A stretch of 64,000 bases of DNA from positions 310,001-374,000 of the forward strand of contig JAUPSS010000004.1 in NCBI GenBank assembly GCA_040285825.1. Reading direction: 5' to 3'. The stretch comes from Eukaryota sp. TZLM1-RC. Taxonomy: Eukaryota > Protista > Metamonada: BaSk clade. Under the pieces are notes generated by a model that worked only from the letters and a program-made list of their open reading frames with translations, was not told the origin of the DNA and did not search any database. Below, piece by piece: positions 16,478-60,974 of the stretch (position 1 is the stretch's first letter; every line of letters begins with the position of its first letter). Both the position numbers and the translations under genes were made by a program.

Positions 16478-18493
16478 TTACAGTAAATTCAACAATATCC
16501 TTGCCATAACATTCTTATAGTCCTCAGGTGCCCCTTCATTGGCAATTTTCTCCAGAAATCTCTGTATCTCCTGACAAAAAGTAGTGTTGTTTTCAGAAAA
16601 TTCTTCGATTTGTTCAGCAAATGTCTCTGAAGCAGGATGATTCAAGATTTTATACTTGATTAAATCAATTTCATCACAAAAAGGCACCACCTCCTTGATT
16701 GCTGAAGGATGCCTACCACCTGGACAATCCTCATAATCCCATGGTGAGAGTAGGTTTGGTCCCTGAAGATCAGGATCAGCGACAACGTAATTACCCTCAC
16801 CATCTTTGTCTAACAATACTCCGCCCATTGTTTCAAAGCCAGGTACTTTTGAAAAATGACCATAAACTAAAAAAGGATGGTAATCAACACTCAATGGCAA
16901 ATATTTGTTTCCATTCCTTCCTACCACTAACCCAGATTCACTGGCGAAAGGAATGAGTACTGTACTACCTACAGGGGGTACTTCTTTGTTGAGGGCATGT
17001 GCAACAACATCCAAGGGTAGCAAATATTCACACGTATCAGCCAGCATTCGAGGTAGGAAAGGGATTGTGAGTGATGTCCCATTGTTGAGTTGTAACTTAA
17101 CCATTCTCCAATATTTTCGCTCAGAAATTTTCACCTTGCCTGTCTTAAATGATTTTGGAAGCTTATTGACTGACTGAATCACTCCCTCAATAAAACCATG
17201 TGAATTACCATTGAAATTGAATTGATGTGGTGAATTATTGAATTTTACGCCAAATTCTCTTGAATAGTACTTGTAAAATCTTTTCAGCCCTTCAGGAATT
17301 AGAGCAATTCCAGTACCTTTTGTAACCCAAAGTGAATCACGGTCTGCGTAGTTTGAGTGGTTATTTAAGGGGCGCACTTCAAAAGAAGATTCATAACATG
17401 ATGGATCCATTGCAACAGAATCTTTTTCTAGTTGAAAGTCTAATCCATCAGTTGATTGATGATTTGATTGATGATTTAATATCTTATCTTCTTCATCACT
17501 TAATTGTTCATTTGATTGATGATTTGATTGTGGTTGAGTGTCAGGTAAATCAGTATCAGTAGGAGTATCATCAGTGCATGAAGTAACCACAGTTTGGCCT
17601 GATTTGATATTTGGATTATCATAATGAGCGGTTGTTGATTCCTCAGGTTGAGGATCATTTTTGGGTTCTGCTTCTTGCAAGATTTCTTTTACAGGACTTG
17701 TATTGTAATTTTTACCGAGTTGAGGAAATTCTTTGATATTTGTGGGAGACGGACATGATTCATCCTGATGTGACCAAGAAACAGTTTGATCTATTACAAA
17801 AATTGGTGGTGAAGAAGCTTCAGAATCCATCAACTCAATTTGATTGGAAGAATGGTTGACTTTGTGAGCAGCAATTTTTGAATTTGATTGAGTTGATGAT
17901 TGATTACCCTCTACTTTCGAAATTGGACTGGAAGAAATGCCCTTGCTCAATAATTGTACAGTTGATTGATTTTGAGAATTGTCAGCACAATTTCCTGATG
18001 ATTGCCCATTTGATTGACTTTTTGATTGCCCATTTGATTGACTTTTTGATTGACTTTTTGATTGACTCTGAGGATGAACTCTGGATTGGTTCTTGGGCAT
18101 TTGGCTATTTGTCTTTTTTATCGAATCGACATCATTGTTTTTCCTTCTTTTCCTACTTACCCAATCCCCATAAACAAATGGAGGAAGTTCATCACAGGAA
18201 GACCAATTATCATCAGGTTCCAGCCATTGTGAGATTAGTGGTTGACTTTCCTTTTTGGGTTGAGTAGGGGTTGGGGGTTGGGGTGAAGGGTGTTGAAGAC
18301 CAAAACCGACCAAGCCTTGGAGTTTCTGAACAAGTTCGGGCTTTTGAGCACTCTTCTTGTAGGTCCACTTATTGACCTCCAAAACGGTAAGTATTTCTGT
18401 TCGAGTTAGCTGTTGTAGATCATCAACAGTGATGGTCTTGCGAGGATCAGTAAGTTGGTAGTAAAGAGTGGAGTATGACTTACTAGATGGCAT
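16478..18493 (-). CDS. Hypothetical 671-aa protein with an N-terminal HeH/LEM-like motif, an S/Q/N-rich linker and an unknown C-terminal domain
   Basis: Long ORF. LQQLTRTEILTVLEVNKWTYKKSAQKPELVQKL resembles the HeH/LEM/SAP helix-extension-helix motif. Confidence 0.7.
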   Translation of the reverse strand: MPSSKSYSTLYYQLTDPRKTITVDDLQQLTRTEILTVLEVNKWTYKKSAQKPELVQKLQGLVGFGLQHPSPQPPTPTQPKKESQPLISQWLEPDDNWSSCDELPPFVYGDWVSRKRRKNNDVDSIKKTNSQMPKNQSRVHPQSQSKSQSKSQSNGQSKSQSNGQSSGNCADNSQNQSTVQLLSKGISSSPISKVEGNQSSTQSNSKIAAHKVNHSSNQIELMDSEASSPPIFVIDQTVSWSHQDESCPSPTNIKEFPQLGKNYNTSPVKEILQEAEPKNDPQPEESTTAHYDNPNIKSGQTVVTSCTDDTPTDTDLPDTQPQSNHQSNEQLSDEEDKILNHQSNHQSTDGLDFQLEKDSVAMDPSCYESSFEVRPLNNHSNYADRDSLWVTKGTGIALIPEGLKRFYKYYSREFGVKFNNSPHQFNFNGNSHGFIEGVIQSVNKLPKSFKTGKVKISERKYWRMVKLQLNNGTSLTIPFLPRMLADTCEYLLPLDVVAHALNKEVPPVGSTVLIPFASESGLVVGRNGNKYLPLSVDYHPFLVYGHFSKVPGFETMGGVLLDKDGEGNYVVADPDLQGPNLLSPWDYEDCPGGRHPSAIKEVVPFCDEIDLIKYKILNHPASETFAEQIEEFSENNTTFCQEIQRFLEKIANEGAPEDYKNVMARILLNLL
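18000..18070. repeat. Coding 12-bp minisatellite (GATTGACTTTTT / GATTGCCCATTT) encoding QSKS/QSNG
   Basis: Tandem units are visible directly. Confidence 0.85.
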
Positions 18494-29340: not shown

Positions 29341-30477
29341 ATGGGAGGTCTTGTTGCACTTGTCAATGCTTCAAACATCCCTGAAGACGTTCTCAAGCAC
29401 ATTCACTCCAACATTCTTGTGAACCTCCTTTCTTCTCCCAACTCTTTCTCACTATCCGTCGACTCTGACTGTGCTCTCGTCATTCAAGCCATGGACTTCC
29501 TTCACTCCAACTCTGTCTCCTGTTTTGTTCTAGTCTCATCCAGTACAGATCTCTCCCCTCTTGTTATAAGGCTTAAACAATCTGAGAAAAGAGTCATTGG
29601 AGTAGGTTCAACAGACTGTGTGGATAGTTACTCAAATTCCTGTGATCGTTTTATTTATTTTTCAAATACTGCCAGCATATTACCAAGCTCACCCACAATA
29701 ATAACTGACTTAATTAAAAAAGACAATATTTATTCAAAACTTTGCCAGAATATTGTGCTTTTATCTCCTGTTTCTTTTAAAAATGAGCTCATTAAACTTA
29801 ATTTAGGAGAATTGTTTGTTTTTTGTGCTGATCGAATTTCAGAACTGAACCAGCTTTCAATTGAAGAATTTTCTGAATACTTGATACGTTATAAGTTCAC
29901 TGTCAATCAATCAAGGAGCAATCAAAATGATTGGACTGTCACAGTCAATCATGGGGTTTTATTTTTGCAGTTTTTATTGATTAAAAACAAATTTCCATTA
30001 ATTGAACCTAAATTATTTTGTAAATTAGTTAAAATTTTAAATCAATTATGCGAAGGTAATTCTGAGTTCAATACATTTGACGAGTTGATTGAGTTGTTAA
30101 CCGAAACCTCTCAATCAGCTTTGATTGATTTGATTGATTGTGGTACTGTCAAGAAATTTGTCAATATTCTGTTTCTTGCTGATCTTTTTGGATTTACAAA
30201 TAACGGAAAAATAATTATTAAATCATTTAAATCACAAAATTCAGAGGATTTATTAATATTTATAGGAACGTTTATTTTGACTTTCATAGTTGAAAACTCT
30301 TCTCTATCATTTGATAGTCTTGATAAGTCAATCAATCAACCTATTCTGAGCTCTTTCCTTTTTGGGAGGGAAGGTGAAAAGTATCTGAAAAGAACAACAG
30401 CTTGTTTGAATCTTTTAGAGCAACAATTACCTTCAGATTTGGTTATGGAAAGATTTCTTAACAATATTGTTGATTAG
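29341..30477 (+). CDS. NYN (LabA/DUF88, PIN-like) domain protein with a degenerate active site
   Basis: SDCALVIQAMDFLHS...FVLVSSSTDLSPLVIRLKQSEKRVIGVG...CDRFIY matches the NYN pattern D.ALVIDAMD...LVSSDSDF.PL..RLRE.G..VIG.G. Confidence 0.78.
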   Translation: MGGLVALVNASNIPEDVLKHIHSNILVNLLSSPNSFSLSVDSDCALVIQAMDFLHSNSVSCFVLVSSSTDLSPLVIRLKQSEKRVIGVGSTDCVDSYSNSCDRFIYFSNTASILPSSPTIITDLIKKDNIYSKLCQNIVLLSPVSFKNELIKLNLGELFVFCADRISELNQLSIEEFSEYLIRYKFTVNQSRSNQNDWTVTVNHGVLFLQFLLIKNKFPLIEPKLFCKLVKILNQLCEGNSEFNTFDELIELLTETSQSALIDLIDCGTVKKFVNILFLADLFGFTNNGKIIIKSFKSQNSEDLLIFIGTFILTFIVENSSLSFDSLDKSINQPILSSFLFGREGEKYLKRTTACLNLLEQQLPSDLVMERFLNNIVD

Positions 30478-30796: not shown

Positions 30797-31969
30797 TTAA
30801 AGTGGTCTAAATCCAAAAGCACTTCTTCTTGCTGTGCTAGCTTGACCATCGATTCTATAAGAGAAACTGCTATTGAAAGTTTCAGAAGAGTCGACTGGAG
30901 CAGTAGAGCTCATTGTTGGTTTTGAAATATTCGAAATATTCAACTTGTCAAACGAAGATGACATTCTCTTAGGAGTGAATGTCACTGAGCTCGATGGGGA
31001 GTCAAAAGAAAATTTCGATCTACTCTTCTCCTTGTCAACAACTTTGGATGACTCACTGAAATTGTTACCAAAATTTTGACGAATACTACCTTGATCCCCT
31101 CTTTTTGACCTACTTCCCATTCGTGACGTGGCACTAAAATTTGCAGCTCTTTTCAAAGTATTGATATCTTCTGGCAAAGTAGTGTGAGCGTTTTCAACTT
31201 CCTGTTGTTTCACCTCTATTTTTGACCTACTATTCTGTGACCTCAGCGATTCAATATTTTGAATCGACTGCAATGACGTGACATTTTTGACCGATGACGT
31301 CATCACTGGCGGTGTTGACGTTTTATTTAAAACATCATTTCTCACGCTACAGACCATGTTATTAGATGCCCTTTTCTGATCAGCATAGTCAAACTGATTT
31401 TTAATTCTGGAATAATTCTCATACCCTTCATCAGCCGCCTGTCTTAAACTATTCATTGGAGTCAATGGTTTGTTCTGGCTTGTTTTCCGGGAAGAAGGAC
31501 ATCGTGGGGAAGAAGGGACAGAGTAAGAGTCCACAGTGGAAGTCTTGAAGGAAGGGTCTACCGAGAAGGAAGGGGATCTTGGTGTGCTTGGGGGACGAGT
31601 AGGAAGTTTGGGTCTGGCAATGGAGGGTGTTGCTGGCTTAGTTGAAGTAGGAGTGAATTGCTTTGGAGGGGAAGGTCTAGGGACAGATTTTGGAGGCATG
31701 GAAGATGGTGGTGCAGCAACATCTGACTTGGATGTACTGGGTTTGGGGGAATATGAGGACTTTGAAGGTTTCGATTTGGGGCTTGATCCAAAAGAGGGAG
31801 ACTGGACTGTGGGGATGGCAAACGATGCAAGAGATGGTTTAGATGAATGTTGTCTTGAAGGGGGTTTGGTTGTACTGGCAGAAGAAGATGGTCCATGCAA
31901 TGATGTTGGTGTATCAGATGGACGGCTTCTGACCACATGACCATCATCTGAGGACATTGCTTTGGTCAT
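30797..31969 (-). CDS. Hypothetical Ser/Pro-rich disordered protein
   Basis: 390-aa open frame with low complexity. Confidence 0.65.
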   Translation of the reverse strand: MTKAMSSDDGHVVRSRPSDTPTSLHGPSSSASTTKPPSRQHSSKPSLASFAIPTVQSPSFGSSPKSKPSKSSYSPKPSTSKSDVAAPPSSMPPKSVPRPSPPKQFTPTSTKPATPSIARPKLPTRPPSTPRSPSFSVDPSFKTSTVDSYSVPSSPRCPSSRKTSQNKPLTPMNSLRQAADEGYENYSRIKNQFDYADQKRASNNMVCSVRNDVLNKTSTPPVMTSSVKNVTSLQSIQNIESLRSQNSRSKIEVKQQEVENAHTTLPEDINTLKRAANFSATSRMGSRSKRGDQGSIRQNFGNNFSESSKVVDKEKSRSKFSFDSPSSSVTFTPKRMSSSFDKLNISNISKPTMSSTAPVDSSETFNSSFSYRIDGQASTARRSAFGFRPL

Positions 31970-34590: not shown

Positions 34591-37105
34591 TGTCTGAAGA
34601 ATAGTGAAAAATAAATAAACCAATTTGCAAAAACCATTCTGAAGAAAGAAAGCAAAAACGAAAATATTTACACAATAACCAAAAAAACAAACCAAACTAT
34701 TTACAACTTGTCACTGACCTTTAAAAGCCATTGGTTTTCCTTCTTCTTATCCTTTTTCGTACCAATACCTTTACCATAGCAACGTGCCAAATGAATCATT
34801 CCTTCTGTTACTTCTGCTTCTGCGGCCATCTTATACATTTCAAAAGCCTTTTCATTGTTCTTTCTACATCCATGACCCTCTTCATAAGCATGGCCTAGCT
34901 TGACAGTAGCTGATCTATTACCCAAATCATGGGCTTGTTGAAACAACCTAAAACCTTCATTATAATCTCTTCCAACACCAGCACCAGTCATATAACTAAG
35001 GTTAGTATATAAAAAACCACAGAAAAAGATCATACCAAATAGCAGTTTCGCAAATTCCCTTTGGTTCACCAGCTTCTCCACTTTTTTTGTCTGTGATAAG
35101 CAAAATAAAGCGAGCAAACACCAATAAAATCGTTGCTGATCATTCTTCTCTGTGCCTCTTCCTAACTCATAGTAAACAGCCAGGTTGTAATAAGCATCAG
35201 TAACTCCTTTTTCAGCAGCAGTTTTGAAGTAATTAAATGCTGCTGGATAATCTTGATCGCATCCTTGGCCAGTGGCAGCCATAATGCCCAAAAAGTACAA
35301 GGGTCGAGCGATTCCTGCATTGCTTGCATTGACAAAACAAGTATAAGCAGCGGAATTGTCCTGATCACATCCAATACCATGCTTGAGACAAATACCCTTT
35401 TCCATCTCAGCATCCATATCACCCCTAGCAGCAGCTTCGTTATCTTTGGTTAGGAAGAAAAGCAAAGAACAAACACCAGTGAAAACTAAGGTTAGATAGG
35501 TTGAACCCTATAACATACCGCTGACGATCATCTTTTGGTACACCTCTCCCTTGTTCATAGCAAACCTAGAGTAAGGGTTAGGGTATGGGACATACGCCCA
35601 AGAGGTAGGCAGGGTGTGAAAGGCGTTCCTCATGATTTGCTGCTTTTAGAAACAGTTCAACAGCTTTCTTTTCATCTTGACGAGTCCCAAGCCCACGGAG
35701 ATAGCACAAACCAGCTTGGTGATATCCTGCTGGACAACCATTCTCTCCTGCTTTGAGGTACCAATGCAGACTCTTTTCATGGGATTGTTGTACCCCATCG
35801 TCCCCTAATCGATAGCTTTGGCCAACGTTGAACATGGCCTTAGCGTTACCTAATTTTGCTGCAGTAATTGCTTGTTTAAAGTCTAAATCGCCTTCATCAT
35901 CAGAGTCATCAGAATTTCCTCCTCCTATTAAATCTCTAAATAGAGCAAGTAAAACTGAAGAAGATATACCACTGTTGTCATCATCATTGCCATCAGAGTC
36001 TGGTTGGAGAGAGGGTAGATCATTGAGTTCCTCAAGAAGTGTTGAACTAGAAGGTCGAGTACCAGGGTCTTGTTGTAACATTCTTTTTACTAAATCAGTA
36101 ACTTTTTGAGGTAATTGATCATAGTTGACAGGAGCAAGACCATTGTTTTCAATCATTTTTGATAATAATTCGAAATAACCTTCATTAATAAAATCTTTTC
36201 CAATCAAAACACGACAAAAAAACAAACCCAGGGCATACACATCAGCAGATTTGGTTGTTTTGGTGGTTTTTCCAGTGATGATTTCGGGTGCAATAAAAGG
36301 GACATTCAAAACAACATTCTTCTCAACTGGAGAATCAGCTGGTTTATAATGGACGGGAGAAAGGCAAGCAAGTTTAACTCCTTCGTTATTGATATCCACC
36401 AAGACATTATCAGGATGAATGTGGCCGTGGATCAAGTCGTTCGAGTGAAGTGAGTTTAGAGATTTGGCAGCCTCTTTCAGGAGCTTGAGCTTGCTACCAT
36501 TGGACAAATCATCTAGAATTTCAGATGCAAAAGCGTCCAGCTTTTGAGTGACAATACCAGCAGGGTTGTGGGTAATGCCATGGACTTGTGGAAGGTTGTC
36601 AGAAGTGCCGAGAGACTGGAAGAGGTTGAAATGGTCGTTAGCGATTGAAACTAGACTATCGTTTCCTTCTCTCCTATATTGAAACCAAAGGACAGGCGAG
36701 TCGTTGAACCTAGCAGCAAGTACATTGCAATCGGAAAGGCATTTGATCAACTTGACATCAGTCAGCTTTGAGGGGTCAATCGCTGTACCTTTTAGCATTT
36801 GATCGAGAATGTTCATCATCACTACGTTGACATTGAAAGATGCGTGTTCAACAGAGGCACGGCAGGATGGACAGTTTTTGTGATCTTTGCACCATGATTC
36901 AATACAAGATTTACAAAAGGAATGTCCTGTGATTAGCAGTGGTCACATGTATACTTACCGCATGAAAGGGAAACAGGAGATTTGAGCAGACCTAGACAGC
37001 ATGAACAGTTAAAAGCAGAAAGAGCTTCAGCTGATAAATTCATCTGAAGGGAAGGAAAATGCATTGTAATTGTGAGAAGGAATGTATAGAGGTGACAGAC
37101 AAGAC
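34591..37105 (-). repeat. Segmental duplication, right arm (inverted)
   Basis: Reverse complement of 12500-15016. Confidence 0.95.
34701..37064 (-). CDS. RING finger - pseudokinase - SEL1-repeat protein, copy 2 (same six introns)
   Basis: Near-identical translation to copy 1, with all splice signals retained. Confidence 0.9.
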
Positions 37106-37205: not shown

Positions 37206-37741
37206 CAGTAACCTCTCTATATTTTGTCGTTATATACCTTCTCACTTTCTACAAATTGTCGTCTTTTCTGGTTCCCTGAGTCATTTATGATTGGAACTTC
37301 TCGCTTTTTCATGTCACAACCACGAAAACTCAAACCAGTACAGATGGGTGCCAAACAGTCAGTACTCATCATCCATTATGCTGATGAAAAAAATGAAGAT
37401 GAATCTAGACCAAGAGTTTCCACAATAGAAGCATACAATGTGCTGCAGATTATCAAAACTTATGCTATGGACAGTTTTGACCACAAACATCCTTCATTGT
37501 ATACTCTGAATGCAGTAGAAAGTGAGTTAGAAACCATTAGACTAAAGAGAAAGAAACAAATATTGTTGATGAGCTAACACCTCAGTTGAATGAAATTACA
37601 TCTGAAGTTATTGATATTGAATAAACATGTAACTTAAATTGGTTTAATGATAGTAATCAAAGAATTGTATAGGTTCTCCCTTTCTATAAGTTCTCGATTT
37701 TGGTTGGTTTTCAAGACAGAGAAGTTATAGAAAGTTTACTG
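37206..37741 (+). mobile_element. Internally deleted pogo/Tigger-like DNA transposon (MITE-like)
   Basis: TIRs CAGTAACCTCTCTATA / TATAGAAAGTTTACTG followed by TA. The fused transposase N-terminus (MSQPRKLKPV) and C-terminus match 46545-48073. Confidence 0.88.
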
Positions 37742-39235
37742 TATGTACATTTGGTTTGTTATGAATGAAGAAGATTAATTTGGTCCCCTAGTATTTTTCT
37801 ACAAAATTAGTTCATTAGGTAAGGAAAGTTCCATTTAGTTCTGAAAAAACATTAAATATTTTTATGTTCTACAAAATAATGTTGTCAACATGAAAAGATT
37901 AGTCACCAAATTCATTGAGATTTCTGCTACCATTTTCAATGAAGTAACTTGTCTGATATGTTCAGTCATTTGAGTGCAAGGCTATTGTTGTCATTGACTA
38001 GTCATTATGTGATTTCAATTATTTTCTCTTATTCAATAACCTTCAAACATAAAGTTTCTTTTATTGAGTCCAAACAAGAGATAAACAATTCTCTCACTTC
38101 GATCTATTTATTCCAATTCGACAATTGAAAATTTCCTGCAGTTACAAACTGTTACTAACAATAACTCAACAATGGTTCATCTGACATAATCATATTTACA
38201 TGAGCTAATGTTAAGTTTTGACAAGATATTAACAAGCCAGCAAGAAGTAACAACCCCAACTGAACTGTTTTGAAGCTTTTGCTTCACATTGAAACATATA
38301 AAATTGCAAGAAAATACTTGAGGCCTAATCTTTGACAATATATTTTTTCATTAATGATTGTTTTTAAACAACATTACATTCAAAACATAATTCACAACTT
38401 TATATGTTGTAAGAATTGATGAAGCATGACTGACTCTGTTATTGACCAATAAGTATCATCTTTTACTTGAAACAAAAAATGAAGACAGTTCTCCGTAACA
38501 AACTCATCATTTCAACCACCGTAGTTCGTATGTCAGTCCACTTATGAACGCATTGAATATTATTATTGCTTCTCAATTTAGTTTTTTTCGTTTAATATAA
38601 CTTGAAAACCATCGTATACGTGCTTGTTCTATCAATGTTGTAAGTCTATTACGTCATCTGGCAAAGTTGAGTAAAGAAAGTTGATTTAAAATTGAGTAGC
38701 ATTAAATGATGAACTAATGCTGTGCTTTTTGTAGTAAAGAAAATTGACATGAAAATAATTGACAATGTTTTGGAGAAATCTTTCAGTATGGAAACGAAAT
38801 ATCATACCAAGTAACATTCAATGTTAAAATAATGATAGGTTTAATCTACTGAATAAGTTGACCTATCATTGTGTGGGATGCTGATCTCTGAGATTTAACA
38901 ATTAAAATAATAAATATATAAAATAAAATAAAGTAAAAATACCTTGAAGAATTAAATTGTCGTGGTCCTGTTGACAAACTTTGTTGTTTCAGAGATATTG
39001 ACGTTTGAATAATATTCTAATTAAATAGAATTAAATTAAATTTTCGTTTAGACATTATTGGAATAGTTTACTTATAACAATGTATTCACCAAATGATTTA
39101 TTTTAAAAACCAGTTTCGATCAGCCGCTATATGAACGTTTGTTTTTGTTAATGTGACACATACAGTAATTGTTCCTCATACCTCCTTACTGCTCCTCTCT
39201 CAAAGTGTGGTTTGTGTAATGGGCTTACATATTAG

Positions 39236-41055
39236 ATGACCCCCCCTTTGCTGTTTTGTTTGGCTATTCATAATATTATTAAAATGACACAACAAGATTT
39301 CCCTGATTTGCGTATTGTTGCCTATATAAATGACATTTCTATTATTGGTTCTTTTGAAAGCATTTCTAGGGTTTCTGAAGACATTGCGGCGAAATACAAA
39401 GAAATTGGTTTAGCTTTGAACCCATCTAAATGTCTCTTGATTGGTAGAGAAAAACAATCTTTGATGATTGGTGGAGCTCAGATTCCTTTTATCAATTATG
39501 ACCAACAAGCTTTTAAGTTTCTTGGATGTTGGCTTGGCAATTTGGATGAAATTTATTCCCAGTTAAACAATTTATTGGAGAAGTTTGACAAGGATCTTAG
39601 TTTTATTGCTGAATGTGACATTGAGAAACACATCAAATTTTTTTATTTTAAAAATTTGTTATTCTGGAAAATTCACTCATATTTTAAGGTCAACTCCCCT
39701 TCGGTATCTCTCAATTTTTGCAGATCTTTTTAACAAACTTCGAGTCAAATTTTTTTCTTCTTTATTAGAAGTAAATGAATCTTTAATTCGAAGTCATGTA
39801 TTTTGTTCAGCAGATTTGGGTGGAATTGGATTCACCAAATCTTCGATTCTGTGTAAAGCAGCATTTTTGGGAGGTGGTAAAATTTTGTTTTTGAATTTTT
39901 CCAAAGGTTCCCTTTTGATGTTCATCTGATCAATGGTGAATCAAATTTTTACTTGAATCAACTACAATTTGAATTAGAAAATTTGCCTAGTGATATCTGG
40001 ATTCAGTGTTTTCCTCAAAATGTTCAAGAAATTCCCACTCGATCACTTCCAAATTTACGTTTTTGCTTGAAAAAGCTTCAGCACCATCTGGTTAAATTAT
40101 ATGAAGGCTTGGATTATGAAGTAAGACTTGGCTTGGCCAAAACTAAAAATCCCGCTTTCGGTAATTTTTTTAAAGGATATTCGTGATAGTTCAGCTGCTG
40201 CTTTAGTAACTCAAGTTCCCTCTGTTTATGGACTTTTGTTAAAAAGACAATGAATGGCTTCTAAACATGCGTTTTCGTTGTTTTCTGTGGCCAAACAATT
40301 TGCCCAATCATTTAACTTGTAAATGTGGTAAACCTCTTTTGTTTACTCATCTTTTGAACTGTAAACATTTCATTACGTTTAGAAGCAAAGTGCATAATAA
40401 CGTCAGGGACCAAATTTATGTAATGTGCAAATCATATCGTGTAGATTCCTTTTTAGAACCGCTGTTATCAAAATTAATTCTTGATGATCCCAATATTGAT
40501 AGTACGCGTTACAACAGAGCTTCTATGGGTCTGACTAGAGGTGATCTAGTTGTTCCGGGTTTAAATGGTAGTTTTACTATTTTGGACGCCATGTCTATTG
40601 ACCCTTGTAATTCCTCTAACGAACATTTCATTAACTCGGATGTAAATAATCCTCTTCTTGCAGGCGAAAAATATAAAATTGCTAAATATGCGAAACCCAT
40701 TTCCTCGGTTAATGACAATTCTCATGCCCAATATAATTTATGTCCATTTGTTTTTTCTTTGCTTGGATCTCTAGGTAAGGCTGCTATGGCTTTCCTTGAG
40801 GATTTTGTTGTAGTTGTAAAGGAAAGAACTGGAAGAATTTTCAATCGTGTTTACTGGCAAAACAGGATTGTATTTTCTATTTTTAAGGGAATGGTAACAC
40901 TAATTTCTGATTCACTATCTTCTTTTGGGAAATTTTCTGAATCTTTAGCGATTAATTGTTTTGATGTAGGGGAGGCAGGTTTTGAGGATGTGGAGTTTTA
41001 ATTGTGTATTTCATATTTGTTGTTGAATAAAAATAAATTACAATTAAAAAAAATA
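39236..41055 (+). mobile_element. CRE-like RLE retrotransposon, family E, 5'-truncated and frameshifted
   Basis: PLLFCLAIH, AYIND, FLGCWLG, GGIG, CKCG..HLLNC, TRGDL and WQNRI motifs, with an A-rich tail. Confidence 0.9.
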
Positions 41056-41304
41056 TTAGATGAAGATACATCGTTTCTTAAATGGAAATAGAAGATGAAA
41101 TGAATCATGAAATCCGAGTTTATAAGGAAATAGCCAAAAAAACGTATCAATATCAACAATAATTTATTAATATATATAAAAATCAATTAATAATGTAGAA
41201 AGTAGATCGAATCTAGGTCGGCCGACCTAAACCAGTTTCAAATTCATTGTTCAAGCATATAATGCAAATTTTCATTTTTCAATCCATCTTGTCACTCCTT
41301 GATC

Positions 41305-44300
41305 ATGCAACAAGAACTCATGGACTTACTACATGAACATAAGGTGTCGCACCACTATATTGATCTTCTATTACAAGAAGGTGTAAAAACTACTGAGGAT
41401 CTCACACTTGTTGTTGAGTACGAAGAACTGCCTGTGGGAAAAGCAATGGATAAAGCCACAGTCAAGAAGCTTGTTTCACAGCTTCCTATCCAGACTCAGC
41501 CACTTCCACAGAACAACTTAAGGGAGACCGAGACTTCAGCACAAACCATTCTGAATAGAGAAGAATCACCTCCATCTACATCTTTCCCACGTCATGGAAA
41601 CCACCCACCCACACGATTATCGACATTTCCTATAGCAAATCCCACACCAGTTGTCGATGAACCACCTCCCCGGTGCACTGCCGCTGGTATTGTTCCCTTT
41701 TTCCAAACACGTTCTAGCACAATGTTGTTGCTGGGTTACCAGAAGCGTGACTTTTCACTCAACTCTCAAATACATCCATTTGGAGGTCAAATTGATTCAG
41801 GTGAAACCACAAAAGATGCCGCCATCAGAGAGTTTATGGAGGAATGTTCAATTCAACACAGTCACTTCTCAACCAATCTTCGGCGTAATCTTGCTTCAGT
41901 GTTGACTCCAAAATTTAGTCGGTACATAGGGGAAGGCAAATACATGGCATACTTCCTTGATATTGATTTATTATCCCAATCAAACAAAAAGGTGATAAAA
42001 GAACTTCCAACCATGTTTACTTCTAATTTCGAAGTGGAGAAAATTGAATGGTTAAATTTGGCTAATTTCAGCAACAATCGATCAAAAACTTCAAAATCTT
42101 CATCACAATTTCTTCAAATAGTATTGAAGAAATTTAAACTTTTTCTTACCACTATTCCACCCAAAAATATTAGTTCAAGACCAGTTTCTGAGAAGGAACC
42201 AATTCATTACATTAATGACTCTGATTCTGATGACTTGATTGATGGTCTTTTGCCAACAACTACCGAAACCACTTTCAGATCCAAGCCAGTGTTAACACCT
42301 CAATTCAATTCTGCTTTGACCATCCAGCAGCAACTAGTAAATGAAATTAAAGAATCAAGTAATATTATAGATTTTTTTGTTTCAAAAAATTGGAAGCTCG
42401 AACTAAAACATCCAACTTTACCCAAAGTTACCAAAATTTCGCCAATCTCAACCATATCTCAAGGTGATCCTAAATATCATCAGCTAATTTCTGCTTTGCC
42501 ATCAGAAATGCATTCAACATTTTCGTCTGTAAGAACAGTTAACGTAACCTCTAGAATTTCTGCATTTAAATCAGAAAAGGATAGGTACACTCAAAACCAA
42601 GCAGTTAATGATTTGACTGTGTTCCATGGAACCCCTGAATCTTGGAGAGCAACTGCTATTGCTTTGAATGGTTTTAACTTAAGTATCACCCTTCATGGTA
42701 GAGCCCTTGGAAATGGAGTTTACACTAGCAGTGATGTTAATGTTACTAATTCTTATAGTGGTGGTCAAGGGTCGGTACTTTGCTGTAAGTCTTTTGTTAC
42801 TCACAACAGATCCAATCTTACTCCTCAGTCGAGTGGTAATATTTATGTTTTCAACAATCCCAACCATGTTCTACCTACTGTGCTATATGATTTTCAGCCT
42901 GATACTCAATCGTCAAACAGCAGTGCTATTAGTGTTGAAGAGGTTGAACGTCAAAGGGCCGAACAAGAACATAGAAACGACATTGAAAAAATGAAGGCTG
43001 AGGAGGTACAACATTCTCAGAAATTGAAGGATCGTTATGTTTCGTTGGTTGAAAAGTATTCGCAAAGATTGACTTTTTTGAAGCACCTATTTGAAAATCA
43101 TAAGAATAATCAACAAGAAGTAATGACTTTGCTGGAGAATGAAGCTCGGTATTTCAAAAGTTCATTACCAATTTATCATCACAAGGAAGAAATTTTAAAA
43201 GCATTTTCTAATTACGGGCTTGTTTTACTCCAATGTGATACTGGTTCTGGGAAATCTACTCAGCTTGCCCAATATCTCAATGACTACTTTTTAGAACAGT
43301 CAATCATCACCAATTCTGCAAAAGTTGATGGTAGAAAAATAGCTGTTCTTCAGCCACGAAGGGCTAACGCAATCTCAATTTCTACCCGTGTTGCCCATGA
43401 AATGGGTGTTACACTGGGAGAAGACGTTGGATTTACTATAGGGTTAGGGGTCGAGTCAACCAGTGACTCTACTCAAATTGAGTTTTTGACACATGGAAAG
43501 TTTCAATCTATTGCGTCTGATATTAAGCGGCTCTTGATGAATTACAAAGCTGTTATTGTGGACGAATGTCATTTGAGATCAATAGAAATTGATTTTGTTC
43601 TATCTCTTTTGAAAGAGACTTTCAAACTTGCAATGCGAGACAGAGTTACTGATTTCAAAGTCATTGTTACCAGTGCAACATTTGATCAAGATTTTGGTAG
43701 GTTGCTGACTCATTTCTTTTCTTCTGTCACTTCTGTCACATCCATTGGTTTTGAAGTCCCATCATTTCCAGTTTTGCTTAAATATGTTGATGTATTTTCG
43801 GGAGATTACCACAATGTAAAGGATACATTTGGATTTGATTATTTTTCCAATGCAATAGTGAATACAGCTATTGAAATGTCTTTCAAGATGTTAAAAAATA
43901 CGTCAGAGGGAAATATTCTGATCTTCCTTCCTTCCAAAAATTCAATTCAGCGCGCTCTAGACACCTTTACTGCCAAGATCCACAGAAAGCACAACCCTGA
44001 AGAATCAACTGAGAATAACCTTGATGATCAACATTGGATTAATCACTTTCTACAGTTTGAATATCAGTTCAAATCAAAACAAATATCTGTTGGTGTATAT
44101 GCTTTCCATGGTCGTCTTACACACACAGAAAGAAACAGAGTGCTCAATGCATCTGAAGATAGAGTCGTGATCATTTCAACAGATCTTGCTGAAACTGGCC
44201 TCACTTTGCCCAATATTCGTTACATAATTGATTCAGGTTTCACTCAGACTGTCAGATGGAATCCACTTTCAAATGTACAAGAAATGACAAGGGAGTTGGT

Positions 44301-46602
44301 GTCAAAAGCAGGGGCAAACCAAAGAAAAGGTCGTGCTGGACGTACTAGTAGTGGCGTCTGTATTAGACTCTACCCAGAACAAATGTTCAATCAGATGAGT
44401 CCAAACATTGAATCAGAAATATCATCTGGATTCGTACTACGCTCTGTTCTCTCTTTGTTGAACTACAGAACTCGTTGTCCAGAATTTAATCTTTTGGAGG
44501 AAATACCCTCAGACTTATATGATGGATCAATTGATTTGTTAAAAAGAGTAGGGGCAATTGATCCAGATTCTCATAAACCAACACAATCTGGACAGTTACT
44601 CTTAGGCCTTGGAGTTGACTTTCATACTGCCTTGTTTCTGATTAAAGCTATGGAGCTGGATTGTTTGGAAAGTGCTGCAAAGATTTCAGCATTGATTTCT
44701 TGTAACGCAAACTCTCTATTTGTCAATAATAATTCTATCAATAGACCGAGGTACATTGCCAAGTTTCTCCACCCAAGAGGAGAGCATGCCACGTTACTTA
44801 ACATTTTCAATAAGTTCCTTGAGCAAAAAGCTAAAAGCCGAAGACGTTGGTGCAGAGATAACGACCTAGATTTTGACATTTTGGCAGAGGTTGATGTAGC
44901 TTACAGTCATTTAGTGGAAACTTTATCTGCCAAGGGATTTGAAATTTGTGATAATCTTGATCCCAATATTGGGGATGTTCACACACATATAATTCATGCT
45001 CTTTGTTCTTCTTTCTTTGACAATATTGCCGTTTTCAGAAAACCTGGTGACATTAAAGGCAGGTTTATTTTATTAAGTTGTGAAGAGGCTGGCTCACCTG
45101 ATTCGTTAGATGTTGATGAAAAGCCAGATAACCTACTTACTTTGGGAACAGAATCTGCGTCTTTATTACAAAGTTGTCAAGTTTCTCCAGATTATTCCTT
45201 CATTGTGTTTTCCAGTCGAATGGCAACAGCTAGAGCAGATCCTGAATCAGGCGAACGATCTTTTAGTAATAGTCTTTCAATTGTCTCGTTTTGTACAAGG
45301 AAGGATCTCATCCAAAGTGCCCCCTCGTGGAGATTGTCGAGCATTAAAAATCAAATCAAACGTCACAGAAGAAGTACCTTTACTATCGATTTATCATCAG
45401 ATACTAAGAATATGTTGAGTGCCACTGGCCACTATCAGCTTAGGTCATTGAGAAATAGACTCAAAAGAGCAACCATAGATTTAACTGGAAATCAATTGAC
45501 TGTTACCACCAATTCTGGATTAAGTAATCATGTGAAGACGAGAATTAATGAATTTTTGGAGCTTTTAACACCAGAACCAATTGAGTTCAACAATTTGCAC
45601 GGTATTAAATTTGGAAAACTTATCGGCAAGAACGGAAAGGATAAAGATGATTTACTGAAAAGGATCAATGGTATTGTTTCAACCGCAACATCTGATCCAC
45701 AATCAGCTACACTCAAAATTGATTCAAAACGTAAATTTATTCGGGTGACTGTACCAAAAATTCCCAATGAATTTATCTCTGTCATAATTGGAATTGTACA
45801 GAGTCAATTAGCTACTTGTAGTGATGCTAGTTTTGTAGCGGATATACCAGACAATATGACTACATCACCAACAGTTTCAAATCATTTGAATTCTAATCCA
45901 AGATTGGTAAAACTTGTTGCTAGTATAGTTCCAACATTTAATTCATCAGTTTCAAGGGATGATTATGCTCTCCTTATTGCACATAGAGCGATTTGGGTCC
46001 TTGGTGCTCAATTGTATGGTGGTTTTGTTCGTGATTATGTTATTCGAAATCAATCGGCAAACGATATTGACTGCTTACTTGCTCCAACTCAAAACGTTGA
46101 TAACTGTATAAGGTTACTGACCACTGACCTTAATGGTTTTGGAATATCTGCTGGAGCTCCTTATCAGAAAGGTGCAGCTTTTTGTGTTCCATTCCAAACA
46201 CCTAGTGGAATTGTGGAGGTTGACTTGGTAGTCGCTGGAAGTATTAAAACTGTATCTCCAGGGGTGGATTGTGATTGTAACAACCTTCTGGTAGATCAAA
46301 ATGGTCTTTCATTGAAGGTGAATGGAGCTGGTGGCCAGCTTTGCAACTTGGCTAATTGTGTAAGGCATGCAAATGAACAGAAATTTGTATTTCTTTACCC
46401 TTTTACAAATCAAACAATGTCAATGTGCATCAGGCGACTTTCCAAAATGTTTAACAAGAATTTTATTTGTGTTTCGAAGTTACCACCCAGTATTGTCACA
46501 CAGTTTAGTTCTTATGCACATTTGATAAAACCTGAGGATGATTACAGTAACCTCTCTATAACTTCTCGGTCTTGGGAACCAACTAAAACCGAGAACTTAT
46601 AG
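41305..46602 (+). CDS. Multidomain protein: SAM-like, Nudix hydrolase, PARP-type ADP-ribosyltransferase, DEAH/RHA RNA helicase (with HA2), KH, and pol-beta-family nucleotidyltransferase
   Basis: Nudix box GGQIDSGETTKDAAIREFMEEC. ART motifs FHGT..IALNGF..G.ALGNGVY..SYS..NIYVF..HVLP. Helicase motifs TGSGKST, QPRR, DECH, SAT, TDLAETGLT and QRKGRAGR. KH motif GKLIGKNG. NTase motifs YGGFVRD..NDID..EVDLV..DCDCNNL. Confidence 0.93.
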   Translation: MQQELMDLLHEHKVSHHYIDLLLQEGVKTTEDLTLVVEYEELPVGKAMDKATVKKLVSQLPIQTQPLPQNNLRETETSAQTILNREESPPSTSFPRHGNHPPTRLSTFPIANPTPVVDEPPPRCTAAGIVPFFQTRSSTMLLLGYQKRDFSLNSQIHPFGGQIDSGETTKDAAIREFMEECSIQHSHFSTNLRRNLASVLTPKFSRYIGEGKYMAYFLDIDLLSQSNKKVIKELPTMFTSNFEVEKIEWLNLANFSNNRSKTSKSSSQFLQIVLKKFKLFLTTIPPKNISSRPVSEKEPIHYINDSDSDDLIDGLLPTTTETTFRSKPVLTPQFNSALTIQQQLVNEIKESSNIIDFFVSKNWKLELKHPTLPKVTKISPISTISQGDPKYHQLISALPSEMHSTFSSVRTVNVTSRISAFKSEKDRYTQNQAVNDLTVFHGTPESWRATAIALNGFNLSITLHGRALGNGVYTSSDVNVTNSYSGGQGSVLCCKSFVTHNRSNLTPQSSGNIYVFNNPNHVLPTVLYDFQPDTQSSNSSAISVEEVERQRAEQEHRNDIEKMKAEEVQHSQKLKDRYVSLVEKYSQRLTFLKHLFENHKNNQQEVMTLLENEARYFKSSLPIYHHKEEILKAFSNYGLVLLQCDTGSGKSTQLAQYLNDYFLEQSIITNSAKVDGRKIAVLQPRRANAISISTRVAHEMGVTLGEDVGFTIGLGVESTSDSTQIEFLTHGKFQSIASDIKRLLMNYKAVIVDECHLRSIEIDFVLSLLKETFKLAMRDRVTDFKVIVTSATFDQDFGRLLTHFFSSVTSVTSIGFEVPSFPVLLKYVDVFSGDYHNVKDTFGFDYFSNAIVNTAIEMSFKMLKNTSEGNILIFLPSKNSIQRALDTFTAKIHRKHNPEESTENNLDDQHWINHFLQFEYQFKSKQISVGVYAFHGRLTHTERNRVLNASEDRVVIISTDLAETGLTLPNIRYIIDSGFTQTVRWNPLSNVQEMTRELVSKAGANQRKGRAGRTSSGVCIRLYPEQMFNQMSPNIESEISSGFVLRSVLSLLNYRTRCPEFNLLEEIPSDLYDGSIDLLKRVGAIDPDSHKPTQSGQLLLGLGVDFHTALFLIKAMELDCLESAAKISALISCNANSLFVNNNSINRPRYIAKFLHPRGEHATLLNIFNKFLEQKAKSRRRWCRDNDLDFDILAEVDVAYSHLVETLSAKGFEICDNLDPNIGDVHTHIIHALCSSFFDNIAVFRKPGDIKGRFILLSCEEAGSPDSLDVDEKPDNLLTLGTESASLLQSCQVSPDYSFIVFSSRMATARADPESGERSFSNSLSIVSFCTRKDLIQSAPSWRLSSIKNQIKRHRRSTFTIDLSSDTKNMLSATGHYQLRSLRNRLKRATIDLTGNQLTVTTNSGLSNHVKTRINEFLELLTPEPIEFNNLHGIKFGKLIGKNGKDKDDLLKRINGIVSTATSDPQSATLKIDSKRKFIRVTVPKIPNEFISVIIGIVQSQLATCSDASFVADIPDNMTTSPTVSNHLNSNPRLVKLVASIVPTFNSSVSRDDYALLIAHRAIWVLGAQLYGGFVRDYVIRNQSANDIDCLLAPTQNVDNCIRLLTTDLNGFGISAGAPYQKGAAFCVPFQTPSGIVEVDLVVAGSIKTVSPGVDCDCNNLLVDQNGLSLKVNGAGGQLCNLANCVRHANEQKFVFLYPFTNQTMSMCIRRLSKMFNKNFICVSKLPPSIVTQFSSYAHLIKPEDDYSNLSITSRSWEPTKTENL

Positions 46603-48073
46603 AAAGCGAGAACTTATACAATTCCTTGATTACTATCATTAAACCTATTGAGATTACAAGTTTATTCGATATCAATAACTTCAGATGCAATTTCATTCAA
46701 CTTAGGTGTTAGAAAGTTCATCAACGGAATTTGTTTCTTCCTCTTTAGTCTAATGGTTTCTAACTCACTCTCTGCTTCATTAAGAGTATACAATATGTCA
46801 ATTTCAAAATGTGGTTATGTTGCATCACATCGACTTTGTTATTTGCCAAATAGACTTGCAAAATTATTTGATGTAAAAACATTCATTCTTCGACAAAATT
46901 TGGAGGGATATGACACAATTGAAACTATTTTAGAATCACAAATGGGAATTGTTGGTTCAAATCCTTTTATTTCTGCATTGAAACAAAATTATATTCTTTT
47001 AATTTTCAATGAAGAGGAAAATGTCGAGGGGATTTTATCACTACTTGTTGGAAAAGAACTATTAACTGAAACAAATATTATTTCAATTTATCGTCATGGT
47101 GATTTTGTATATCCAATTGTTGCACAAACACCAAATGGATGGTCAATGAGTGCAACAAAATTCACACCATCATTTAAAAAATTCATTCAGGAAGAAGTTC
47201 GTTCATCAATTCAGGTGAGTAGATTTACAATTCCAAATTTGTTGGAATTTCAAAATGTGGTTATGTGGAAATTGTCCTGTGTGACTCTTTCAGTAACAAT
47301 AATTGGCAATATTTTTCTTAGAAAATGTTTTGAATAAAAGCGCTTAAACACTGCAATAATTCCAGCATCGAGTGGTTGGATGTGTGAAGTGGCATTCTTT
47401 AACAAAAACTCAGTCCTCACATTAGACAAATTTTCAGTTAAAATGTGAGATGGGGCATTATCAATGAGCAACAGAATTTGTCTTCCATTTGCTCTCATTT
47501 TTTCATTCAGTTTCTTACAGTAATCGGTAAAAATTGATGAAGTCATCCAAGCCTTTTTGTTAGCATACCACAATAAGTTCAGTGAATTGGCAGTGTTTGG
47601 TTTCATACCGCGAGGCTTTTGAGACTTGTTGATGATACCGAGAGGCAGTTTGTTGAGTTTGACTCAACAAACAGTGCAAGAGCAGCATCAAGGTCAGGGT
47701 GTTTTACAGAACGAACTCTCTTTGGTCTCAAATTTTTGCCCAGGGCAAGAGCTTGCTCAAGAACTTGTGAACGTCGCTTCAAAATCTTTCCAATAGTTGT
47801 ACGATGGGGTTTTGAGGGCAAGTTGAAAGTCTCTTTAGCCCAGGATGCCAAAGCAGTATTCTTTAGATGAGGATTTTCGTCAGCATATTGGATGAGGAGT
47901 GCTGACTGTTTGACACCTATCTCTACTGGTTTCGGTTTTGGTGGTTGTGACATGAAAAAGAGAGAAGTTATAAAGCGAGAAGTTACAATTATAAATGACT
48001 AAGGGAACCAGAAAAAACGAGAATTTATAGAGAGTGAGAAGTTATATAGCGAGAAGTTATAGAGAGGTTACTG
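46545..48073 (-). mobile_element. Non-autonomous pogo/Tigger-family (Tc1/mariner superfamily) DNA transposon with TIRs and TA duplication
   Basis: TIRs CAGTAACCTCTCTATAACTTCTCG, with TA at 46543-44 and 48074-75. CENP-B HTH at 47603-47953 and DDE_1 fragment NKKAWMT..LLIDNAPSH..QPLDAGII, with internal deletions. Confidence 0.93.
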
Positions 48074-59320: not shown

Positions 59321-60974
59321 TTAATCCCTTACTCCACTTTCATCATAAAAAAACATTGGTTCACCTACTTCCTCTTCCTCATCTACATTGCTTCTCAACG
59401 GGGGAAGTCCAGCAGGCCGCCTATGTGGAGGTGTATCCTTATTAATTGGTGAAAGCGCATTTGGTTCTATTTGACCTGGTAAAACTTCCTTATTCAGCTC
59501 ATCAAAATCTTGACTTGGTTCATCAGGAACCACTTCCTCAGCATTGACAGCAGCTCTTGCAGAGTTCAACCCTTCCTCCAAGTTTGACAACTTAGCATCA
59601 TGAGTGGTTTCCAATTGCTTTAACACTTTACCCCTAAATGAATCTCTGATATAGTAGACACCAGAGGTAATAGTAGCAGGTCTGTTGTCCCAATTGCTCG
59701 GATTGAGAGATAAGCTGAATAAAGAATTTGTAAATATTTCCTTACTGGTTTTGGATTTAATTTGGTGTAGCGTCTGTAACACTGATGAATTTACATCTTT
59801 TTGCTCAGCTGCTAGTGCTAATTGGGATACGTGAGTCTTTGAGATTCTTCTAGACTCAGAATAATGACCTGATAATATGTATGCAGAGAATACTATTAAA
59901 AGAGTCATGTGTAGAGTGAATGATAATGAAATTTTCAGCAAAAATGAAGAAAAGATCACCAGTCCAAATATTTGTAATGATTTGACAACTGAAAATGCCA
60001 AATCAGAGCTCTTCACTGAAAAATTAAAGGTCGTGAATGGTACAATTAATGGCAGCACCAACACAATTATAAACAAAATAGAATTAATTAATTCTTGATT
60101 AAAAATGATTAAATTTTGAACATGATTAAAATCCAGCAGAGGTTCATTTAAAACAAAAGAAACCAAAAAACAAATAGGAGAAGTTAAAAAGAATAATCCA
60201 AAAAATTGACCCAAGACCGTATTATAAATGGAAGGACAGCAGGCAAAAAATTGCAGGTCCTTGATCTGAGAGGCAAAGGCCACGTCCACCAAAGCTGCCT
60301 TGAACTCGGATTGGTTGGTAAAGGTGAATAAAGAAGATGGCTGCGAAGTGTACTGGGTGGTGGAGGTATAGGTATGAGAGTCTCTACCAAAGGAAAGAGC
60401 AAATCTTCTAGTGAGACTGGCTGTGATTGTAAACAAAAGAGTAGAGACGAGTGCCATGAGGGTGGGAATGAGAGGGACTGAGATAGAATGGAAAGAGACA
60501 CCAGAAACAGGGTCGAGGTCTGTTGTGAGGAAAAGAGCGATGGATGAGACAGAAAGGAGTCCAGCTAGGATACGGCCAAAGGATAGAGAGCGGCGAAGAA
60601 TAATCAGAGAAACAAAAGGAGAAAAAAAGAGTTCTGTGGAGAAGAGTAATATGCATAGCTGAAGATCATTGTGATTCATCAGGGACCATGTTGCTAGGAT
60701 TACGGAAGCAGAAAAGAGTAAGGAGGTGACAAGATAACATGGAACAGGAAGAAAGAGGTTGAATGTTTGTTTCCATCGGCTATGATAAGATTAGTGAACC
60801 ACCATACCGGATACACGTGTTGATGAGATAGAAGAATGCAATCAACGAAGGAAGAATGAAGATAAGTCCCAGTAAAGTAAAGGGAGCAGCTATGTTTAAA
60901 GCATCGGTAATCAGGGATACAACGAGAGCCAGAACAAGCGGCGTAGAGACTAGATAGAGTAGTGCAGCAATCAT
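59321..60974 (-). CDS. Multi-pass membrane protein, DMT / nucleotide-sugar-transporter-like (intron 60780-60807)
   Basis: A 28-nt GTATGG..CTTATCATAG intron joins the two ORFs in frame. About 10 hydrophobic segments precede a charged C-terminal tail. Confidence 0.7.

Follow-up and report, generated by a model that had tools for sequence, protein, structure and literature searches.

A conserved eukaryotic protein family that joins Nudix, PARP-like, DEAH helicase, and nucleotidyltransferase domains in one polypeptide

Introduction

The TRAMP complex, which serves in RNA surveillance, is made up of three proteins, a Ski2-like helicase, a non-canonical poly(A) polymerase, and an RNA-binding subunit, and is not known to include ADP-ribose enzymes. 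Marking of RNA with ADP-ribose has been described for the catalytic domains of PARP10, PARP11, and PARP15, which ADP-ribosylate phosphorylated RNA ends, a modification that macrodomain hydrolases reverse (PMC6582358). Most of what is known about this reaction was learned in vitro, from human PARP domains studied in isolation (PMC6582358). Here, we describe a gene that brings together in a single chain a Nudix hydrolase domain, a PARP-like ADP-ribosyltransferase (ART) domain, a DEAH/RHA-type helicase, and a nucleotidyltransferase (NTase) domain. The gene lies in a 64,000-nucleotide (nt) stretch of the genome of the metamonad Eukaryota sp. TZLM1-RC (assembly GCA_040285825.1, contig JAUPSS010000004.1, positions 310,001 to 374,000 of the forward strand), which we call the window; all positions below are those of the window.

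An earlier reading of this DNA, made from the sequence alone, had singled out the open reading frame (ORF) as encoding a protein of undescribed architecture. We found that this free-living metamonad carries the ORF as an intact gene with a single exon, and that the gene adds a member to a conserved eukaryotic family without a name. The domain order of the family is fixed: an N-terminal helical domain, a Nudix domain, the PARP-like ART, a long helix, the DEAH/RHA helicase, a KH-like region, and a Pol-beta-type NTase. We are all but certain that the gene and the family are both real.

Results

The ORF is an intact single-exon gene

The stop-to-stop frame that contains the gene extends from 41299 to 46602 on the forward strand. 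Its first ATG, at 41305, gives a product of 1765 amino acids (aa), and the gene model given for this sequence in public databases (P0001, 1760 aa) begins at the second ATG, at 41320. Over this span, the one stop in the coding frame is its own, against 82 to 174 stops in each of the other five; the runner-up stop-to-stop frame in the window measures 681 codons. From the base composition, which gives a stop frequency of 0.072 per codon, an open run would average about 14 codons, compared to 1765 for this ORF, and the chance of 1767 stop-free codons is about 1e-57. GC content at codon positions 1, 2, and 3 is 0.45, 0.38, and 0.30, so the ORF is composed in the manner of coding sequence. We found no second copy, paralog, or fragment of it elsewhere in the window, and its nearest relatives are metamonad proteins, in Skoliomonas isolates.

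The earlier claim of an intact 5.3-kb ORF is therefore borne out by one stop-free frame of 1765 codons whose product is colinear with proteins from independent genomes. The positions proposed for the Nudix, ART, helicase, and NTase motifs and for a GxxG loop also proved correct, with helicase motif II reading D-E-C-H. Read-through into an in-frame ORF at 46648-47337 was considered and rejected, as the relatives stop where the window protein stops. The stop codon itself lies within a 17-nt tandem duplication (1.9 copies, 46586-46618).

The same architecture recurs across distant eukaryotes

The protein P0002 of Skoliomonas sp. TZLM3-RCL is 44% identical to the window protein over 99% of the length, and both P0002 and P0003 (Carpediemonas membranifera) are colinear with it from the first residues to the last. 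Orthologs that are colinear over their full length, at 27-44% identity, come from no fewer than four lineages of metamonads and from three further groups of eukaryotes. Among the family members are proteins of the metamonad Kipferlia bialata (P0153), the choanoflagellate Choanoeca perplexa (P0116, with an added Macro domain), the oomycete Aphanomyces stellatus (P0118), and the chrysophyte Chlorochromonas danica (P0151). Skoliomonas GEM-RC1 contributes fragments (P0100 and P0139), and Skoliomonas TZLM1-RC has two adjacent gene models (P0194 and P0101). The orthologs of the Skoliomonas isolates are 40-50% identical to one another and to the window protein, which suggests that the protein diverges fast.

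A search with the full-length family alignment was dominated by ordinary DEAH helicases. An exhaustive search with the last 396 residues returned 147 representative clusters, 99 of them at E values of 1e-10 or below, and domain mapping of the large matches placed ART, helicase, and NTase together in about 20 large proteins. Conservation is reported below for a family alignment of 21 sequences and, for the C-terminal region, an alignment of 51. The Nudix box region is carried by 18 of the 21 aligned representatives, and at least 18 of the 21 share the same colinear architecture. Many metagenome proteins share it as well, often with an added Macro domain.

The taxonomic spread of the family is patchy, and its members are all annotated either as hypothetical or with automatically assigned names, for example "HrpA-like RNA helicase/O-acetyl-ADP-ribose deacetylase/MutT" in metagenomes. 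The sequence-only reading had taken the architecture to be undescribed. It is not one of a kind: a search of public databases finds it in metamonads, a choanoflagellate, an oomycete, a chrysophyte, and metagenomes. A search of the available full texts did not find a description of it, although an earlier mention in a review of ADP-ribosyltransferase evolution is possible.

Two further arrangements were seen in Skoliomonas TZLM1-RC. The adjacent models P0194 and P0101 (P9112_012668 and _012669) encode Nudix-ART-helicase-KH and then NTase, reflecting either a split annotation or a real break. Two loci from this Nudix-ART-helicase ortholog lies a helicase-plus-NTase paralog, P0165 (P9112_012666).

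A sister architecture occurs in oomycetes, Paulinella, and Pedospumella (P0004, P0113, P0120, and P0155). These proteins have the same C-terminal NTase (E values of 1e-22 to 1e-33), a DEAH-type helicase, and a PARP-like domain, but they are arranged as helicase, long middle region, PARP, WWE, and NTase. The helicase is thus N-terminal, WWE takes the place of Nudix, and the PARP domain stands between helicase and NTase.

Helicase, Nudix, and ART domains

The coordinates of the domains are collected in Table 1. For the helicase, the Pfam models DEAD and Helicase_C both scored above their cut-offs, and PDB sequence searches matched Prp43, DHX15, DHX8, Prp16, Prp22, and HrpA at E values of 1e-58 to 1e-45, with 1e-58 to 1e-50 for Prp43, DHX15, and HrpA. 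The Prp43 and DHX15 alignments reach residue ~1250, through the winged-helix and ratchet region. The NCBIfam HrpA model matched at an E value of 4e-74, under its equivalog cut-off, and OB_NTP_bind gave a weak score of 12.4 bits against a cut-off of 29.5. Motifs I, Ia, Ib, II, III, IV, V, and VI lie at residues 647-1013 and are invariant across the family except for a Cys in motif II. The DEAH helicase claimed earlier is accordingly present with all of its motifs, with DECH, not DEAH, as motif II.

The Nudix domain was also recovered: PF00293 scored 29.4 bits with the whole protein and 35.0 bits with the domain alone, above the cut-off of 21.1. The Nudix box spans residues 161-183 (nt 41785-41853), and its metal-binding Arg-Glu..Glu-Glu signature is intact (R175, E176, E179, and E180); among the 18 relatives in which this region is present, 17 retain it. 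Decapping and ADP-ribose removal had both been put forward as its activity. Decapping is no likelier than ADP-ribose processing, and the Macro or WWE domains that relatives add point to ADP-ribose chemistry.

The ART core proposed from the sequence was upheld by its modeled structure. In an AlphaFold model built on 22 family sequences, the domain has a predicted local distance difference test (pLDDT) score of ~90-97, and Foldseek matched it to PARP10, PARP12, PARP15, PARP14, ZAP, and tankyrase (E value of 2e-7, probability of 1.0, template modeling score of 0.60-0.67 normalized to the target). By sequence, phmmer against the PDB gave marginal matches to tankyrase and PARP12 (E values of 0.07-0.3). 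All 21 sequences share H441, G442, T443, Y473, and Y484; H441 and Y473, the His and Tyr of the NAD pocket, align to the His and Tyr regions of tankyrase. Because the family has no conserved catalytic Glu, the residue needed for poly-ADP-ribose elongation, the domain resembles a mono-transferase rather than a polymerase, and membership of the polymerizing PARPs was rejected on the same ground. The long helix that follows the ART in the model may be a coiled coil.

The C-terminal domain has a Pol-beta fold

The C-terminal 396 residues, modeled on 51 sequences, gave a pLDDT of 91 and a predicted template modeling score of 0.88. The motif G-G-F-V-R-D / D-I-D occupies residues 1572-1589. G1572, G1573, R1576, D1577, D1587, and D1589 are invariant, D1640, the third carboxylate, is present in 20 of 21 sequences, and D1655, N1660, and K1714 are nearly invariant. 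In the model, the conserved residues sit on a strand-helix-strand unit and a later strand, as in the Pol-beta active site. This confident Pol-beta fold and the invariant carboxylates confirm the NTase that had been called from its GGFVRD/DID motif.

Foldseek searches of the PDB matched the domain to class-II CCA/A-adding enzymes, FAM46/TENT5, TUT1, and Pol mu (probability of 1.0, E values of 1e-4 to 3e-3). In BFVD, the domain matched many proteins of giant viruses, annotated as "NT pol-beta-like," as "Poly A polymerase head," or as RING-type, at E values of ~1e-8. Many of these matches are of mimivirus, klosneuvirus, cedratvirus, or pithovirus type and combine the domain with RING, F-box, or BTB modules; proteins labeled "Poly A polymerase head" in phages were also among the fold matches. 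Short relatives pair the domain with WWE (11 of 51), RRM, cold-shock, or PARP domains.

At the sequence level, no Pfam, NCBIfam, or PADLOC model matched the NTase domain of the window protein, and 3 of its 51 relatives weakly touched PF01743 (E value of 0.0016). A profile of the 51 relatives found nothing significant among PDB sequences; the CD-NTase CdnC was a marginal match (E value of 2.1) over the region from the DxD to the third Asp. A word-based protein search with the NTase region returned only the window protein itself and P0002. Orthology to CCA-adding enzymes was rejected, since the window protein lacks their neck, body, and tail and does not match PF01743. The domain is best treated as a separate, unnamed NTase family.

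Two giant-virus metagenome contigs encode the domain. One specifies a 297-aa protein (L002:2896-3789) in which the NTase-type domain (27% identity over ~180 residues) is followed by a RING finger, and the other contains an 861-aa ORF (L001:2614-5199) with a G-G-F..R-D/D-I-D motif.

KH-like and N-terminal regions

In the model, the first of the two small units between helicase and NTase is alpha-beta-beta-alpha, and the second has the KH-type-I-like order beta-alpha-alpha-beta-beta-alpha, with G1441-K-N-G1444 between its first two helices. The GxxG KH loop proposed earlier fits this modeled topology, with the motif at residues 1441-1444. No Pfam KH family matched at E values up to 10 and no PDB sequence was found, so that the predicted KH assignment is supported by topology and motif only.

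The N-terminal domain is modeled as four helices (residues 2-11, 16-24, 30-38, and 47-59) followed by a disordered linker (residues 64-117), and it is kept only among the nearest relatives. It had been described as SAM-like. The SAM fold has five helices, as against four in these 59 residues, and residues 1-59 matched neither a Pfam family at E values up to 10 nor a PDB sequence; the SAM assignment was therefore dropped. The SAM-driven oligomerization proposed with it is unsupported, as no SAM family or structure was matched by sequence. Single-sequence searches of the PDB with the N-terminal, KH-like, and C-terminal segments all returned no match.

Table 1. Features of the gene and its immediate surroundings, in window coordinates
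Feature	Position	Strand	Details
Complete single-exon coding sequence	41305..46602	+	1765 aa + stop; alternative annotated start 41320
N-terminal four-helix domain	41305..41481	+	Residues 1-59; AF2 pLDDT 90-97
Nudix hydrolase domain	41677..42159	+	Residues ~125-285; AF2 pLDDT ~90; PF00293
PARP-like ADP-ribosyltransferase	42445..42894	+	Residues 381-530; H441, Y473
Single long helix	42916..43098	+	Residues 538-598, joins ART to helicase; AF2 secondary structure
DEAH/RHA-type SF2 helicase	43150..45234	+	Residues ~616-1310; RecA1, RecA2, probable winged helix, ratchet, and OB fold
Two small alpha/beta units	45421..45816	+	Residues 1373-1421, then 1424-1504; AF2 pLDDT 72-97
Pol-beta-fold nucleotidyltransferase	45955..46524	+	Residues ~1551-1740; AF2 and Foldseek
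Decayed retroelement remnant	39236..41020	+	Reverse-transcriptase-fragment ORF (RVT_1, 29.5 bits) and repeat-family ORF 40267-41001
Inverted-repeat arm	46548..46800		Partner arm ~37495-37745; ~250 nt, ~89% identical

The gene lies among repeats and retroelement remnants

The window is AT-rich (~35% GC) and rich in repeats. Reverse-transcriptase-like pieces occur at seven loci between ~10.9 kb and 64.0 kb, several of them split into two to four pieces; the longest that is still open encodes 433 aa and scores 58 bits with RVT_1, and none of the seven loci looks complete. A second repeat family occupies ten loci, one of which is the 244-aa ORF just upstream of the gene. The two repeat families agree with the earlier description of decayed mobile DNA around the ORF. 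The remnant that contains the 244-aa ORF is on the same strand as the gene, has an A-rich end, and stops ~290 nt before the start codon; a direct repeat (D16) is also recorded for it.

At the other end of the gene, the right arm of the inverted repeat covers the last ~18 codons, the stop codon, and ~200 nt downstream. The codons beneath it encode an unconserved, low-confidence protein tail, and the folded protein is for that reason unaffected by the repeat. This arm may have arisen by duplication of the end of the gene, or it may belong to a repeat element whose terminus now provides the stop codon. The start of the ORF at 46648-47337 shows a short match to 37496-37570.

The other nearby genes are ordinary eukaryotic ones, encoding kinase and Sel1-repeat, WD40, and NYN proteins, and no part of the window resembles human DNA. 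A 378-aa ORF with an NYN ribonuclease-type domain (29341-30477, + strand; E value of 5e-13) is an RNA-processing gene 11 kb upstream. A 2.5-kb inverted duplication, with arms at 12500-15016 (+) and 34591-37105 (-) that are 97-99% identical and ~20 kb apart, is a recent segmental duplication; each copy contains a protein-kinase and Sel1-repeat ORF and a second Sel1-repeat ORF, and the left copy adds a RING-finger start. Four minus-strand ORFs of 645, 671, 452, and 390 aa (6002-7939, 16478-18493, 59321-60679, and 30797-31969, respectively) had no Pfam match and each occur once in the window; they are probably lineage-specific genes.

Discussion

Each module of this protein belongs to a known superfamily, and the combination is already public, although without a curated name. 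Conservation across the family extends to the catalytic signatures of the Nudix, helicase, and NTase domains and to the His and Tyr in the NAD pocket of the ART, which suggests that all four modules are probably active enzymes. Domain partnerships point to two themes: RNA, through the RRM and cold-shock partners of the NTase, and ADP-ribose, through the Macro and WWE domains of relatives. We tentatively read the protein as a machine directed at RNA, in which ADP-ribosylation and its turnover are linked to nucleotide addition at the 3' end, and we put the chance that this is right at slightly under even. RNA surveillance or defense is the likely setting.

In such a machine, the helicase and the KH-like unit would hold and thread single-stranded RNA, and the ART, as a mono-transferase, would pass single ADP-ribose units from NAD+ to a phosphorylated RNA end or to proteins close by or on that RNA, perhaps itself among them. 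The Nudix domain, together with Macro or WWE domains in relatives, would cut, remove, or read the ADP-ribose adducts. A single polypeptide would then both write the ADP-ribose mark and turn it over. At the 3' end of the RNA, the C-terminal NTase would attach nucleotides without a template. Taken together, these steps would tag selected RNAs for decay, for silencing, or for protection. The patchy spread, fast divergence, ADP-ribose toolkit, and giant-virus homologs of the family suit RNA surveillance or defense against RNA viruses and retroelements, without proving it. The defense models of PADLOC gave only marginal matches (HamB helicase at an E value of 1e-5 without a qualifying stretch, others at E values of 2e-3 or above).

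We also consider a narrower proposal, which we think improbable as it stands: that the protein marks both ends of an RNA from a single chain. Here, the ART would cap phosphorylated 5' ends with ADP-ribose, the minimal NTase would tail the 3' end, and editing or reading of the mark would fall to the Nudix, Macro, or WWE domains, all directed against RNA viruses or retroelements. The giant-virus proteins that combine an NTase with ubiquitin-ligase adaptors would then possibly be a counter-measure.

Several observations weigh against the RNA-directed reading or against the parts of which it is composed. For the ART, the Pfam PARP model (PF00644) scored 17.9 bits with the whole protein and 22.2 bits in the domain scan, under its cut-off of 26.7. 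At the third catalytic position, placed from the strand order of the model (the strand before the last strand) and not by residue-level superposition, there is no conserved acidic column: within residues 506-516, an acidic residue is found in at most 5 of 21 sequences, and Pro is the commonest. The solved enzymes nearest to the Nudix domain by sequence are of MTH1/MutT type and match over the box only (E value of 1e-3), and NCBIfam matches were sub-threshold. Motif II of the helicase is D-E-C-H in the window protein only (residue 755, nt 43567-43569), the Cys being Ala in 20 of 20 aligned relatives. Both glycines of the GxxG loop are kept in 11 of 21 relatives, so that the loop is degenerate in about half of the family. 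The NTase domain comprises only ~190 residues, and the neck, body, and tail through which CCA-adding enzymes bind tRNA are missing. Finally, the RING, F-box, and BTB partners of the giant-virus NTase-type domains would fit a role directed at proteins or small molecules equally well.

The last two points lead to a different account, in which the protein is a sensor and effector. The helicase and KH-like region would sense foreign RNA, the NTase would make a nucleotide signal or bind or modify ADP-ribose or proteins, and the ART and Nudix domains would act on proteins or on free NAD+ or ADP-ribose. An NTase so minimal, with no tRNA- or RNA-binding body, would be at home there, as would its association elsewhere with WWE, RING, F-box, and BTB domains, which speak of ADP-ribose reading and ubiquitin targeting; CdnC, the marginal match of the PDB profile search, is likewise a CD-NTase. 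However, the nearest solved folds are template-independent RNA 3'-end transferases and not cGAS, OAS, or CD-NTases. The G-G..R-D signature is of the PolyA_pol head type, which the three relatives that touch PF01743 also recall, and the domain partners RRM and cold-shock modules as well. On this balance, we consider a sensor and effector unlikely.

Whom the gene serves is a separate matter, as it could be cargo of a mobile element or an endogenized giant-virus gene that works for the element and not for the host. The retroelement debris that fills the neighborhood, the ~250-nt inverted repeat at 37.5 kb and across the 3' end of the gene, the NTase relatives in giant-virus contigs and proteomes, and the patchy taxonomic spread all speak for such an origin. 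Set against them are the colinear orthologs of four or more metamonad lineages and of three eukaryotic groups beyond them, which at 27-44% identity extend over the full length, whereas the viral relatives share the NTase domain only, at ~27% identity. In addition, the gene is single copy with no fragments elsewhere in the window, and the sequence between the repeat arms contains no capsid, packaging, or transposase gene. We therefore regard a mobile or viral origin as very unlikely. That the ORF is a mis-assembly, a chimera, or a decaying pseudogene still open is barely credible: the repeat over its last ~18 codons, the tandem duplication over its stop, and the unusual Cys of motif II might suggest as much, but its open length is far beyond chance, each domain boundary is colinear with independent genomes, the family-invariant catalytic residues are all intact, and codon-position GC is that of coding sequence.

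The find is less singular than first thought, since the architecture was already present, unannotated, in public databases. As an RNA-directed machine, the family would offer a natural system in which to read out the biology of RNA ADP-ribosylation, with a PARP10/12/15-like ART tied to a helicase, an RNA-binding fold, ADP-ribose modules, and a 3'-end transferase. If this reading is true, ADP-ribose-based control of RNA, or immunity, extends to deep-branching protists. The C-terminal domain in turn defines a sizeable NTase family, with its 147 representative clusters and giant-virus homologs.

Among known proteins, the human mono-ADP-ribosylating PARPs PARP10, PARP12, PARP13 (ZAP), PARP14, and PARP15 give the best structural matches to the ART, which keeps the His and Tyr and has no conserved catalytic Glu. 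Like the window protein, they combine an ART with RNA-binding and ADP-ribose-handling domains, represented here by the Macro and WWE domains of its relatives. None of the human PARPs, however, is known to carry a helicase, Nudix, or NTase domain, and the sequence similarity is marginal. With Prp43, DHX15, and bacterial HrpA, the window protein shares all of the helicase motifs and probably the winged-helix and ratchet region, but it is only ~27% identical to them, scores far under the equivalog cut-offs, and has a weakly detected OB fold and a DECH motif II; the enzymatic domains that flank its helicase are absent from those proteins. The class-II NTases, TENT5, and the giant-virus "NT pol-beta-like" proteins have in common with its C-terminal domain the Pol-beta fold, the G-G..R-D helix start, the DxD strand, and the third Asp on a later strand, whereas the window protein lacks the neck, body, and tail of the class-II enzymes and has no Pfam match there. 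The comparison with TRAMP is one of analogy, with no homology claimed. TRAMP divides its work among three proteins, while the window protein is one chain and its helicase is of the DEAH type; in both, a 3'-to-5' RNA helicase, an RNA binder, and a template-independent NTase would be brought to bear on one RNA.

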